A stretch of DNA of 63,833 nucleotides, the filler included, from Olpidium bornovanus S191 (Eukaryota; Fungi; Olpidiomycota), in assembly GCA_017911155.1 (NCBI GenBank). It is 30 parts of 30 records of this genome, joined end to end, with 100 filler letters (N's around TTAATTAATTAA, not from the genome) between each part and the next. Parts side by side here need not be neighbours in the genome. Positions count along the whole stretch, not along the records: positions 46,215 to 50,395 come from JAEFCI010012861.1; 29 more parts are not named here. One strand, written 5' to 3'. The stretch's first letter is position 1. Each line of letters opens with the position of its first letter. This document shows, in pieces, positions 4,261-50,395 of the stretch. The translations under genes and the position numbers were made by a program. The notes below the pieces were generated by a model. It saw only the letters and a list, made by a program, of their open reading frames with translations. It did no database searches and was not told the origin of the DNA.

Positions 4261-4650
4261 TCATGCGTCAGCGGAGGACGGATTATCAGGGGTAGCGACC
4301 GAGGAACCAGACGGCGGCGCGAGGGCAGAAACCGACAGGGAAGGAGCAGCCGACGCGGCAGAAGACCGGGTAAGACGGCGGCGACGAGCCGGAGGGGGTT
4401 GATCGCCGTCATCGCCTTCTCTGGGATTGGCCGAGTTGTGACCTCCACCTTCGCTGCTGTCACTTTCGTTTCCTGTATCGTTTCGCCAAAGGTCAGCGAA
4501 GAGGAAGCTCCGCGTACGCACTTGGCCGTCGGCGATTCGTGAAGTTAGTGCTGGGAAGGATTCTCGACGGCGTGCCCACTCGAGTATGACGTTATAGGAG
4601 GAGGCGGTCAAGCGGGATGAGGGAAACCAGCAGGAACGGGCGCGCCCAAG
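4261..4650 (-). repeat. Unclassified multicopy repeat family, copy A
   Basis: Aligns by eye to 7193-7583 (+). Both encode YNVILEWARRRESFPALTSRI.DGQVRTRSFLFADLWRNDTGNES. Confidence 0.85.
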
Positions 4651-5016
4651 NNNNNNNNNNNNNNNNNNNNNNNNNNNNNNNNNNNNNNNNNNNNTTAATT
4701 AATTAANNNNNNNNNNNNNNNNNNNNNNNNNNNNNNNNNNNNNNNNNNNNCATGTATCACACGTAGCCCAGGTGGTGTGAAGTGGACGCCTGGAGCATGT
4801 GCAAGGGGAATCTGCATTCTTCGGTGGAAGCCTTGAAACGGCGGGCAGAGCGCAGGGAGGAGCGGGGCAGCAGCGGCGCAGGCCCGTGCGTGGCGAGCGA
4901 GAGCCAGACTTTTGCTTGCTCGCTCTCCTCTCGTTTTTTCGCTCAACCCTCCCTCCCCTCCCCTCACGCACGCACGCACGCGGGAGATAAAAAAAAAAAG
5001 AGAGAATAAGGAGGCA

Positions 5017-46114: not shown

Positions 46115-46739
46115 NNNNNNNNNNNNNNNNNNNNNNNNNNNNNNNNNNNNNNNNNNNNTTAATTAATTAANNNNNNNNNNNNNNNNNNNNNNNNNNNNNN
46201 NNNNNNNNNNNNNNCATGAGTTAAAGCGATGTGTAGCGTCCCGAAATGCCGATTGGTTTACTAGATCTGCCGGTAGGAAATTGGACCTCTACCAGTACAA
46301 GCGTACTTACAATACTGTAGTATTAATAATAAACGAATAGTTATTATATTGTGAATACTATATGCGTAACTTTTCTTTTCTTGCTTCTCCCTTTAGATCG
46401 TTTTCATCCTTCCTGCTGCAGGACACCAATACCCCGCATCTTGGTTGATTCGTTTCGTCGAGATCGGCGCCGTTGCGCGTTTGCTCCCGAATGCGTGAAG
46501 GTCTGCGCCCGCATCTGTACCGGCAAATCACAACGTCGAAAGAAATACCAATGTAAATATGTATTAATAAGACAGCGGGCACATAAGGGAAGCTAAATGG
46601 GGTGGAGTTGGGCTCGGGGACACATTTTGTATATAAAATGCACGCATCCGGTGTGCGTGCGAATGAAACGCATTCCAGCCAGGTGACACCGCCGTCGTTC
46701 GTAAAATAAATGTACTTCCATCTAATTCGCGGTGGGTAG

Positions 46740-48175
46740 TTATTCTCGTTTCGCTTGCGGTTGAAGTTCTGCCGTCCAAACCAGCGGGCCGTCGGTTGTC
46801 ACCTCAACCGTGTCCGCGTCGTCGCAGAGCTGGTTTGAGGAGCTTATGAGTCCGCCGAACTCGGATCGTCGCGAATCTGAAGGGCAAACGAACGACGCAT
46901 CAGTGCGAGAGCAGTGTTCGGCGTCGTCGTCCGTTCAAGAGCGGGTGCGCCGGGGGGAAAGAAGGGGGGGGAAGGGGGGCGGCAACCAATTTTGCTCTCA
47001 GATATACTTGCCGAGGTTCCATCTAAGCCCTTGCGTGGAGTACGTGACCGGGCCAGCGATGGGTATGAGGCCGCAGGTCGGCCCCTCTAGGTGTTTGTCG
47101 ATCTTGATCGCGTGTCGTCCCTGGAAAAGGGGCACCCGGTAAAAACGATTCTTCGAAAAGGATGACGCGTTTGCGGAGCCAAAGAATCCTTCTCGCACCT
47201 TCCAGAGCAAAAACGCAACGCTGTCTTCGCTCATTAGGTAGATACTGCGCTCCTCACGAAGATGAAATAGCTGATTCAGGTTCGCCATCGACTGGTCGAA
47301 CCGGCCACCTAGTGCCCCGTACGCGACAACAGCGAACTGCGGGGTTCAAACGGTGGGTCGTCGGCGGGGCGGACGCACGTGACGAAAGTTACAGGGTTGA
47401 AAGGCATCCTGCGGACGACCCCAGTAAGCGGGATGTACAAAAGTAGGCATGTGCTGTGCCCTACCTTTTCGCCCATTTTCAGCTCTACCGCCCGCATGTA
47501 TTCAAGACATTTCATAAAGTCGGTGGTTTCCTGGTCATCGTCGTGCTTGACCTCGCATCCCTGTTGCATGTGCCGGATTCAGCGTGTCGGTTTGGTAGCT
47601 ATCCCCGCCCACGCCGTCCAAGCTCGCCGCACAATCCAGGGGTCGGGCGTAAGCTCACCAAGCTGGCATAGTAATCGCCGACTTCTGGTCGCAGCGAGTC
47701 CAGGTCGCCACAGATGCAACGTGGGACATATCTTGAAAAAGGATCGTCAGTGCGCTGTGTCAGCAACCCCCACCCCGCCCACCGCTCCGCTCGGCGGCGC
47801 AGGACCGCTGAGTAGCGAGGCCAGGAACCTTACGATCTAAGGTTCTCCTCCGATGTCTCGTACGCATCATGCAGACGGTTGGCCCCACCGTCCGCGCAGA
47901 GAACAAGAGAAGCTGTTCACCCCGTCAGCGAAGAAGACCGCGCGAATTTTTCACACCCTGTGGGGAGGAGGGGAAAGTAATCAAAGATTCCCAGCAGCAG
48001 CAGCGGCGGCGGCGGCAGCGGCTTTACCTGCCCGCCAGACGAGCGGGAAAAGGGTTTCCGTAGCCCGGATGGGCTGGTTGAGGATGACGAGGGTGACAGG
48101 AGGCAGCACTGGTGGCGCCGTCTGCCCCCGCCGGAGGACCTCGGAGAAGCACCAGGTTCTTGTTGAAGATGTCAT
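46740..48175 (-). CDS. THI80: Thiamine pyrophosphokinase, apparently complete, multi-exon
   Basis: LVILNQPI, CADGGANRL, ICGDLDSLR, DQETTDFMKC, GALGGRFDQSMAN, CGLIPIAGP...TQGLRWNL and FGGLISSSN...VTTDGPLVWT. Confidence 0.95.
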
Positions 48176-49236
48176 CGCAGTCCGTTGTTAGTGCTGTCAA
48201 GTCAAAATAACCGTAGTATTATCATTCTTTCGCTCTCTAGTTTGTTTGTGCAGTGTTTTGTTTATTTTTTGTTTATTTTTTTATTTAATTTCTTTAATTT
48301 ATTTTTATTTTTACTTTTACTTTTACTTTTGATGTTGTTTGTGCATCTGCCGGCGAGAAATTCGGAAACGTGCGCAGAAAGAAGAACGAGGCGGGACGGA
48401 GGCAGGGCGCGCCCCGTTAAAGCAACAAAACATATATGCATGGGATGATGGCGCACGCACGCCGTGGATTATGGGCAGCATCCACTCTATTCCATTCGCT
48501 TTAAAGTGCCGTCCAGAGAAGACCCCTGCTGTATCGCGCCAACTACTTGCTCTGTCATCTGGCCAAAGCGGTGCGTTTTGATTTGCCTCGGCAGGCTGCC
48601 ATATTCAATTACTCAGACTTATGGCGGCGTGCATGCCACTAGGCAGGATTCGGATCGAAAACAATCCTCCGCAACATCATGCGAGCTCCAGAACACCCTT
48701 TGAAGGCTCAACTTTTCCCCGCGGGTTATTTGAGGGCCGCGTTGGGACAACCGCGGCATCACGTGACAAAAATGTGCCGATGGCAGCAATCAAAGTCAAA
48801 TGTCACGTGATTAAACGCGCCGGGCAGAAAAACCCCCTCCCCCCAACCTCCGCACGAAAAGCCGGCGACAAAATACTGCCGGGAAGGCCCTGACGCCCGC
48901 GGAGATCGCCGTCGTCGCAACGCACCCCCCCTTTGTCCATCCGCGCGAGGTCCCTTTTTGACGGACAGCAGACAGAGCAGGCGCAGGCGGGATCGGCGGA
49001 GGCCGGAAGCCACGAGCGGCGGCGGGAACGCGGGAGGGCCTGAGACCTGGAGGGAAATAAGTGGTGGCAAAAGGGAACACCACCGCGACCGGCCGAGAGA
49101 CCCCCTCTCCCCCCTCTCCCCTTCCCTTGCGGGAAGCGGAGGAGAAGGGGCTGCCGGTGACTTTCCCTCTCTCGGCGAGGCCCGGAAGCGAGCCGACGGC
49201 GCCGAGGAATAGGACAGCAGCTAACGGGAGGCGAAC

Positions 49237-50395
49237 ATGACCGGAGACTTCGAGTGAGTGTGGGCCCCTTTTCCCTCCTCTTTCCCCGAGCGCTTCCTGT
49301 CGACGAAGCTCGCTGGAAGAGAAGGGAACCTCCTCCGCCCTCTCTCACGAATGGCGCCAGCAGTCTTGAGACGTGGCGTACCCGCAGTCTGGCCCGGAGT
49401 GAGCGAAAGTGGCTGGCGAATTGGGCTACTACCTGACGACGGCAGCCCCGAGTGCCTCCATAGCTTGCCGTTTCCCGCCCTCCGGGACTAACGCGGCAGG
49501 CAGCGGCTACAACGCCGAGAAGGTCATGCTGAACAGGTGTTTTTTTTTTATAACGGTGGACCTTGCGGTTTTTGTCCCGTCGTATCTCCACCTTTCCAGG
49601 AAGCTGACCGTTTCTGAGCTGCGCACGGAGCTGAGGCAGCGGAAGCTCTCGACGTCAGGACGCAAGTCAGAGCTGGTCCTCCGTCTGATCCAGAACGCCG
49701 GGGAGACTGAAGACGACACTAGCAGCGACGACGGCCTAGCCGACGCATCGGCCGTCGAAAAGGACATCGTTACTGCGGACGAGCCGGGCGATGGTGAGGG
49801 GCCATACCTCTTGACACGCAGTGCCCTCGATGGGTGGTCTGCAATTCTCCGGACTAGCGAGATTTGGGGCCCCGATTGCTGACTCGCCGCAATTTTTCCG
49901 GCAAGATCCCATCGCCGCCAAGCGGCGAAAACTGGCAGATTACCGGAACGGGATAACCATCTATAGGCACCCGCACATCGTGCTGAAAAATTTTATCCAC
50001 TACCTGGCCCATGAGGCGAAGGTGGTATCGTTGTACCTTGTATCACACCGGTACATCCTCCCGGTGTCATCACTGGCTGCGCTCGTGTCGTATCTGGGGT
50101 ACACAGTCCCAGGGCCCCACCAGTCGGTGAGCTGATAACATTTTTTTGCGGCGCGGATCCGCTGGGTTCGTTCCGCATCTCGCTAAAACGAGTCTCTTCC
50201 GCTTGCGGCTTCCAGACTGTCCAATACATAGAGGACATGTTCTTATGGTACGGTTATTGGGTCATACTTGGGATCATGTCGTCTGTCGGCCTCGGGACTG
50301 GATTGCACACCTTCGTCCTCTTCCTTGGTCCGCACATTGCCGAGGCTACCCGAGCAGCATATCTGTGCGGAAACCTTAACTTCGAGGTCAGCGGC
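49237..50395 (+). CDS. VMP1: Vacuole membrane protein 1 (VMP1/TMEM49) with N-terminal SAP domain, 3'-partial
   Basis: Exons 49237-49253, 49504-49536, 49600-49793, about 49908-50126 and 50216-50395 splice in frame. SAP: [32 protein letters not shown]1: [29 protein letters not shown]. Confidence 0.88.

Follow-up and report, generated by a model that had tools for sequence, protein, structure and literature searches.

The question raised by the locus at positions 49237-50395 of a 63,833-nucleotide stretch of Olpidium bornovanus S191 DNA (assembly GCA_017911155.1; this whole stretch is called the window below) is whether it encodes a SAP domain joined in frame to the membrane protein VMP1, and what such a domain might do there. 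VMP1 is an endoplasmic reticulum (ER)-resident scramblase of the DedA superfamily, acting in the biogenesis of autophagosomes, lipid droplets and lipoproteins (PMC12749514; 10.1101/2020.12.18.423352). ER localisation and phospholipid scramblase activity have been established for human, Toxoplasma and Plasmodium VMP1, and the apicomplexan protein is required for secretory organelle biogenesis (PMC12749514). An earlier note on this DNA had proposed the fusion. Based on comparison with the genes and proteins of relatives, the SAP exon and the VMP1 exons are judged to be fused at this locus with a probability of about 0.85 to 0.9. The architecture itself is known in the databases and is common in early-diverging fungi and many invertebrates.

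The locus lies on the piece of the window from 46215 to 50395 (JAEFCI010012861.1; GC 0.56), and the gene model is cut by the edge of that piece at 50395. A five-exon GT-AG model on the plus strand, 49237-50395, reproduces the peptide of the earlier note, whose splicing path (phases 2, 2, 1 and 0, with CTAAC and CTGAC as branch points) was re-derived and proved right at every testable junction. Homology searches were run exon by exon. An Rfam scan of the piece returned no match.

The SAP domain is encoded by exon 3 (49600-49793, plus strand), where it occupies exon residues 1-31 and is followed by an acidic tail ending in ...EPGD and the G of a split codon. The exon's match to Pfam family PF02037 (SAP) covers positions 4-34 of the 37 in the profile and scores 44.7 bits (E 9.5e-12), where the cut-off is 23.9; among PDB sequences the exon is closest to the SAP domains of Tho1 from yeast and E1B-AP5 from human. 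An AlphaFold2 model, for which 21 aligned SAP segments of VMP1 homologues were the input, has helices at residues 4-13 and 22-35 with confidence scores (pLDDT) of 93-95, while the tail scored 52-69. Four residues, L7, G20, R28 and L29, are invariant across the 21 segments, which comprise exon 3 and those of 20 VMP1 homologues from fungi and animals. When the fold was compared using Foldseek, the top matches were the SAP domains of Tho1, Hcc-1/SARNP, 3'hExo, E1B-AP5, MKL1, SF3B2, FAN1, DEK, PIAS1 and Ku70, with root mean square deviations (rmsd) of 0.6-1.3 A over 30-37 residues; the Foldseek E-values were weak (at least 0.07) because the domain is so small. Exon 3 encodes a genuine SAP motif, helix-loop-helix in form and some 35 residues long, near the N-terminus of the predicted protein, and the roughly 35 acidic, low-confidence residues which follow it in the model probably form a disordered linker.

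The VMP1 part is encoded by exons 4 and 5. Exon 4 (49906-50126, plus strand) contains the basic juxtamembrane motif AAKRRK, the motif I-x-[IVL]-[YW]-x-x-P and the first hydrophobic helices, and it ends in GPHQS. A word search with the open reading frame (ORF) of 104 amino acids at 49821-50132 returned no match, which its length made likely in a search with a length window. Exon 5 (50216-50395, plus strand) is incomplete, running off the edge of the piece, and holds the most conserved stretch of VMP1. Searched alone against 1.84 billion representative proteins, exon 5 gave 909 matches at E<=0.001 (best E 1e-20) and was 61-76% identical to the best of them; all the matches whose names were checked were VMP1 homologues. 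The best matches of exon 4, found by local phmmer among the fetched proteins only, were from Mortierellaceae (Dissophora and Lunasporangiospora; 37 bits, E 3e-11). In an alignment with 17 homologues, exon 4 spanned the basic stretch next to the membrane, the motif I-x-[IVL]-[YW]-x-x-P and the initial helices, and exon 5 the WYGYW... core. The region of the VMP1 hallmark GLGTGLHTF-x-L-[FY]-LGPHIA was found in exon 5, and the tail which follows, NLNFEVSG, has in the alignment the fungal pattern (DFETRG or DFDVRG), unlike the NFPEPPYP of animals. An apicomplexan origin, which base composition had suggested, was rejected, as the best relatives and the tail after GPHIA are fungal. Pfam returned nothing for exons 4 and 5 at E<=1, with a local copy that misses PF27639 even in known carriers and with the VTT domain lying beyond the piece, and a PDB sequence search with exon 5 gave no match. 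From these results the locus is very probably the 5' part of a VMP1 orthologue of the DedA superfamily, in its SAP-bearing form and fungal in type. Its scramblase core would be expected, by analogy, to work as in other VMP1s.

Whether the two parts are joined depends on intron 3 (49794-49905, plus strand; 112 nt, phase 1), which interrupts an Asp codon (G|AT) immediately ahead of the basic motif. Its donor, ATG|GTGAGG, matches well, its acceptor is CAAG|AT, and a CTGAC stands at 49879, 23 nt upstream of the acceptor; a second in-frame acceptor is available at 49857. The SAP exon is on the same strand as the first VMP1 exon and 112 nt upstream of it. By itself an in-frame GT-AG path is weak evidence, because the SAP and VMP1 frames can be linked by 15 in-frame donor and acceptor pairs. 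The fused reading is supported by the conserved position and phase of introns in relatives together with the conserved order and spacing of the domains. In Linnemannia elongata AG-77 (locus L022), whose annotated product is fused, an intron occupies the same codon, phase and aligned column as intron 3: the SAP exon ends ...TCA G|GTACAC and the next exon starts CATAG|AT TTC ATT AAC CGG CGA AGA (D-FINRRR), the counterpart of which in the window is D-PIAAKRRK. Intron 4 (50127-50215, plus strand; 89 nt, phase 0; donor TCG|GTGAGC, acceptor TTCCAG|AC) is placed after GPHQ and one further residue, and both place and phase are shared with Spizellomyces (L020, GPHQG|TVAILES...) and Linnemannia (L022, GAHQP|LLKHAES...). 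The conserved introns of these relatives, which belong to distant fungal lineages, lie at 4749/5165 and 5393/5581 of L022 and at 4593/4652 of L020, at the phase 1 and phase 0 positions.

Other relatives carry both parts without any splicing between them. The homologue P0191 has SAP and VMP1_C in one unspliced ORF of 1491 nt on a Logan contig, and for P0126 a single unspliced ORF of 858 nt (L021) has a translation exactly equal to the SAP-VMP1 protein. In Spizellomyces an ORF (L020:4255-4650) runs unspliced from SAP helix 2 through the acidic linker and the RRR motif into the membrane helices. In the model about 131 residues separate the end of SAP from the GLGTG motif, where 81 SAP-bearing homologues have a median of 137. 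The claim of the earlier note that SAP is fused in frame to VMP1 is thus upheld by the intron positions of relatives, their unspliced ORFs and the spacing of the domains. A metagenome scan with exon 5 yielded 19 VMP1-like loci (55-82% identity) on short contigs, with no SAP exon detectable upstream and none near the window sequence, and was uninformative on the fusion.

The spread of the architecture was assessed using several sets of homologues. Among 392 fetched VMP1-like proteins 84 have a SAP domain, always N-terminal of the VMP1 motif. An N-terminal SAP was found in 14 of the best 150 representatives for exon 5; the Pfam cut-off for SAP was passed by 11 of the 12 checked, with Lunasporangiospora just below it (22.8 against 23.9 bits). 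In a word search with a Geranomyces protein the combination PF02037, PF27639 and PF09335 was present in 38 of the best 120 relatives. The carriers were Spizellomycetales (Geranomyces, Powellomyces, Thoreauomyces, Fimicolochytrium, Spizellomyces and Phlyctochytrium arcticum), many Mortierellaceae (Podila, Mortierella, Linnemannia and Actinomortierella), animals (Lytechinus, Elysia and Pinctada), and Polychytrium, Batrachochytrium dendrobatidis, B. salamandrivorans, Phlyctochytrium planicorne, Paraphysoderma and Amoeboaphelidium. The same search with an Owenia protein found the architecture in 25 of the best 120 relatives, from molluscs, annelids, a nemertean, a brachiopod, amphioxus, echinoderms, a hemichordate and chelicerates. 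Further carriers were the beetle Oryctes, the flatworm Macrostomum, Mya arenaria and Sorochytrium (Blastocladiomycota). Lacking SAP in these lists were all vertebrates (about 405 aa), Mucorales, Basidiobolus, Syncephalis, Piptocephalis, Dimargaris and Allomyces, and Glomeromycotina and Neocallimastigomycota are without a SAP flag in a precomputed table.

With 38 of the best 120 relatives of a chytrid query and 25 of the best 120 of an annelid query carrying it, the architecture is not unusual; it is widespread and already annotated in databases, which is the condition that the earlier note itself had named as refuting. The view that animal VMP1s lack SAP stands for the listed vertebrates and fails for molluscs, annelids, echinoderms, amphioxus, hemichordates, chelicerates and a beetle. 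UniRef names the proteins of Macrostomum, B. dendrobatidis, L. elongata, Powellomyces, Elysia, Pinctada and Paralvinella "SAP domain-containing protein", while some animal carriers are called "vacuole membrane protein 1-like isoform X1" in RefSeq, where Physella has an isoform X1 of 474 aa with SAP and an isoform X2 of 418 aa without it. A literature search retrieved no article pairing VMP1 or "vacuole membrane protein 1" with "SAP domain", and the domain is unmentioned in a study of apicomplexan VMP1 (PMC12749514). This silence may be due to the fact that the VMP1s which have been studied, human and apicomplexan, are not reported to have SAP.

Several features of the gene weigh against the fused reading. 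The acceptor of intron 3 (CAAG) is suboptimal, the other acceptors being stronger; exon 1 and the choice of start codon are conjectural; and only some 60 residues of the core are reached before the edge at 50395, short of the place where the VTT/DedA domain PF09335 matches in homologues (residues ~240-400). The weak acceptor also favours separate products, namely a short SAP-only protein to the stop at 49880, made when intron 3 is left unremoved, and a VMP1 begun at the ATG at 49830 (MGGLQFSGL...), or, in a milder form, fused and SAP-less isoforms side by side. The frames would permit this, since the SAP frame reads on into intron 3 as far as 49880, and the VMP1 frame has no stop from 49815 onward and an ATG at 49830. 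Such a start would leave about 33 residues before I-x-I-Y-x-x-P, near the length seen in SAP-less VMP1s, and RefSeq lists isoforms with (X1) and without (X2) SAP in several animals, Physella among them. Opposed to it are the position and phase of intron 3, conserved with a species whose annotated product is fused, the unspliced ORFs of relatives, and the 84 SAP-bearing homologues, which agree in domain order and have similar spacing. Moreover, the ATG at 49830 has a T at -3, and a stand-alone protein of SAP plus acidic tail has no counterpart among the matches. Separate products are considered very unlikely. That the SAP-like ORF is a product of chance or a relic, either a dead exon or a fragment of an unrelated neighbouring gene, would be in keeping with the ease with which in-frame GT-AG paths arise by chance, as the 15 pairs illustrate. 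This explanation is effectively refuted by a SAP score far over the Pfam cut-off, by a GC content at third codon positions of 0.77 in the SAP exon, like that of the VMP1 exons, by the conserved intron position and by the occurrence of the architecture in dozens of lineages.

The fused reading leaves the role of the domain to be considered, for which the earlier note had suggested chromatin tethering, nucleophagy or lipid remodelling of the nuclear envelope. SAP domains are helix-extended loop-helix modules which mostly bind DNA or chromatin. The SAP of the predicted protein would face the cytosol or nucleoplasm, because no signal peptide or hydrophobic segment precedes it and a basic cluster stands before the first membrane helix. 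It might serve as a nucleic-acid or chromatin handle that keeps some of the VMP1 at the nuclear envelope or in the perinuclear ER. With about 95 residues, the N-terminus outside the membrane would fit through the lateral channels of the nuclear pore, so that the inner nuclear membrane could be reached by diffusion; chromatin binding could then retain VMP1 there or in the perinuclear ER, and scrambling would be on hand where the envelope grows, where pores insert or where the envelope is remodelled. The internal ATG at 49830, or an alternative promoter, could yield a SAP-less isoform. As support for tethering only, the best fold matches include SAP domains bound to DNA or nucleosomes (Tho1, DEK, Ku70 and FAN1), and the LEM domain of emerin was a weak match (rank 40, rmsd 1.7 A, E 6.8, probability 0.21). 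A tether to chromatin or nucleic acid at the nuclear envelope is the preferred mechanism and is possible, with the odds set against it.

Counting against tethering, the KRRK motif is no dedicated nuclear localisation signal (NLS), SAP domains may contact RNA, as in 3'hExo, the SAP domain of MANF binds the nucleotide-binding domain of the protein BiP (bioRxiv 10.64898/2026.04.03.716285), and the ER is where TgVMP1 and PfVMP1 have been found (PMC12749514). The 3'hExo, MANF and ER findings can also be read in favour of a SAP which is truly fused to VMP1 without binding chromatin, and which would instead contact RNA (mRNAs or ribonucleoprotein particles at the ER surface) or act as a protein-interaction or regulatory module in the general ER. 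Among the fold matches the 3'hExo SAP is seen with the stem-loop RNA of histone mRNA, and the PIAS1 SAP carries the PDB title "p53 binding domain". SAP has also been lost repeatedly while VMP1 was kept (vertebrates, Mucorales, Zoopagomycota), which suggests an accessory, regulatory role, and the X1/X2 isoform pairs of animals suggest that inclusion of SAP is regulated. Against a SAP of this kind, the best sequence and fold matches are classic DNA-binding SAPs (Tho1, SARNP/Hcc-1, hnRNP-U-like, DEK, Ku70 and FAN1), and the invariant Leu, Gly, Arg and Leu are kept across fungi and animals; both observations discriminate weakly. A role away from chromatin is offered tentatively, as something that may be so and on balance is doubted.

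A broader proposal takes SAP-VMP1 as the ancestral VMP1 of opisthokonts, with a pool of scramblase at chromatin or the inner nuclear membrane for envelope growth, pore insertion or nucleophagy. It is regarded as unlikely. On this proposal the domain may have been kept in chytrids, Blastocladiomycota, aphelids, Mortierellaceae and many invertebrates, and lost in vertebrates, Mucorales and Zoopagomycota. Should SAP indeed place a scramblase at chromatin or the nuclear envelope, lipid scrambling in the ER would be linked to the biology of the nuclear envelope. The point of wider appeal is the presence of SAP on the N-terminus of VMP1 in a large share of fungi and invertebrates; the window itself offers an ordinary annotation, a fungal-type SAP-bearing VMP1 gene beside a thiamin pyrophosphokinase gene.

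The earlier note had also paired an "NLS-like KRRK" with the SAP domain. In the alignment KRRK corresponds to basic juxtamembrane stretches of both SAP-bearing and SAP-less VMP1s, the latter including those of vertebrates, Mucorales and Basidiobolus. Counterparts are ARRRELAEQR in Spizellomyces, NRRRIALE in Mortierellaceae, REKRKEEKEER in Latimeria, DRKSRDREER in Xenopus and IRRKDEIQ in Radiomyces. The pairing does not hold, given these aligned stretches in SAP-less proteins, and KRRK was rejected as a SAP-linked NLS, the alignment showing it to be a general feature of the VMP1 family. The basic cluster fits the positive-inside rule and an N-terminus in the cytosol.

At the 5' end of the model, putative exon 1 (49237-49253, plus strand; 17 nt) consists of the ATG and 14 nt encoding MTGDF and the GA of a split Asp codon; it is the least certain part of the model, five residues being too few for homology support. 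Putative intron 1 (49254-49503, plus strand; 250 nt, phase 2) has the donor CGA|GTGAGT and a CTAAC at 49488, 12 nt before the acceptor. Exon 2 (49504-49536, plus strand) supplies the C of the split codon, ten residues and AG. Its frame is open upstream to 49403, with no other ATG there, and an ATG within it at 49526 provides an alternative start, MLNR-KLTV..., resembling the short N-terminus of the homologue P0126. Intron 2 (49537-49599, plus strand; 63 nt, donor GTGTTT) is T-rich, with a GC content of 0.44 against 0.58-0.63 in the flanking exons. It is a multiple of three in length and free of stops, and an ORF at 49409-49882 runs through it. If intron 2 were retained, 21 mostly hydrophobic residues would be inserted directly N-terminal of the SAP domain.

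Upstream of the SAP-VMP1 gene and divergent from it, a thiamin pyrophosphokinase gene with at least five exons was identified on the minus strand at 46743-48175. Its recognisable pieces are MTSS...LVILNQP...VWRAG, LCADGGANRLHD and ICGDLDSL; the catalytic end and the start of the B1-binding domain lie at 46998-47345, and FGGLISSSN...VEVTTDGPLVWT at 46743-46934. In an exact look-up, the 96-aa ORF of this gene had no record in the collection searched. The intergenic region common to both genes (48176-49236, 1.06 kb) includes an AT-rich microsatellite of TTTATT and TTTTAC units at 48256-48330 (GC ~0.36). Just upstream of the SAP-VMP1 start it also has long tracts rich in CT or GA, one of them at 49095-49125.

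Some observations were made on the homologues and their records. The motif [ST]-P-[YF] or Y-S stands ahead of SAP in many fungal and animal proteins. In the Amoeboaphelidium occidentale cluster (P0153 / P0087) there are tandem SAPs at residues ~6-55 and 58-107, with a T-P-Y motif before each, and in one fetched VMP1-like protein the first SAP copy starts only at residue 399. Very long VMP1 models were found in Phlyctochytrium bullatum (P0175; 839 aa, with an added PF13646 repeat domain) and P. planicorne (P0181; 790 aa), and these overlong models may be merged neighbouring genes. In NCBI many fungal VMP1 homologues bear the name "Vacuolar membrane protease", and UniRef has several under "Golgi apparatus membrane protein TVP38"; both names are ill-suited to a protein of the VMP1 family and look carried over from other records.

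Compared with known systems, the predicted protein recalls the LEM/HEH proteins (Heh1/Src1, Heh2, Lem2, MAN1 and emerin) in outline, having a small helix-extension-helix module, of a kind that binds DNA or chromatin, at the nucleoplasmic or cytosolic N-terminus of an integral membrane protein of the ER or nuclear envelope; it differs in that the membrane part is a scramblase of the DedA superfamily and not of the MAN1/Src1 type. No LEM or HeH profile matched exon 3 in Pfam at E<=1, the matches being SAP, SAP_new25, FANC_SAP and one unrelated family. Nor was a dedicated inner-nuclear-membrane signal (an NLS with a long linker) identified, the sole basic cluster, KRRK, aligning with SAP-less VMP1s. 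Judged by its sequence, the locus is not a member of the LEM/HEH tether family. SAP-less VMP1s (vertebrate VMP1/TMEM49 of about 405 aa, and those of Mucorales, Basidiobolus, Zoopagomycota and Allomyces) share the basic stretch, the I-x-[IVL]-[WY]-x-x-P motif and the core, and differ from the predicted protein in having no SAP and only about 40 residues ahead of the first helix. Dictyostelium Vmp1 and Arabidopsis KMS1/2 presumably belong to this group as well.

The invertebrate SAP-VMP1s, such as those of Owenia, Lingula, Haliotis, Mytilus, Biomphalaria, Branchiostoma, Asterias, Lytechinus, Saccoglossus, Centruroides, Pycnogonum and Oryctes, have the same architecture and SAP residues as the window. 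They are set apart by the animal tail NFPEPPYP after GPHIA, and in many of these species a SAP-less isoform X2 is predicted. The fungal examples are Spizellomyces sp. 'palustris' (P0171), Geranomyces (P0044, P0166), Batrachochytrium dendrobatidis BATDEDRAFT_37041 (P0179) and Linnemannia elongata AG-77 K457DRAFT_143278 (P0206), with Sorochytrium (P0013), Paraphysoderma (P0221) and Amoeboaphelidium (P0153) as further examples on the fungal side. None is close to the window, as the 61-76% identity over exon 5 and scores of 25-37 bits for exon 4 indicate. The linkers of Mortierellaceae are much longer than that of the window (proteins of 550-660 aa), Spizellomyces and Batrachochytrium have an intron in the SAP loop (after RKRKL and RFRKL, respectively) which the window lacks, and Amoeboaphelidium has two SAP copies, unlike the window. 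What the window has in common with the fungal SAP-VMP1s is the order of parts, from an N-terminal SAP through an acidic or low-complexity linker and a basic motif to the VMP1 membrane core, as well as the fungal tail after GPHIA, a similar spacing from SAP to the motif, and introns shared with Linnemannia (introns 3 and 4) and with Spizellomyces (intron 4).

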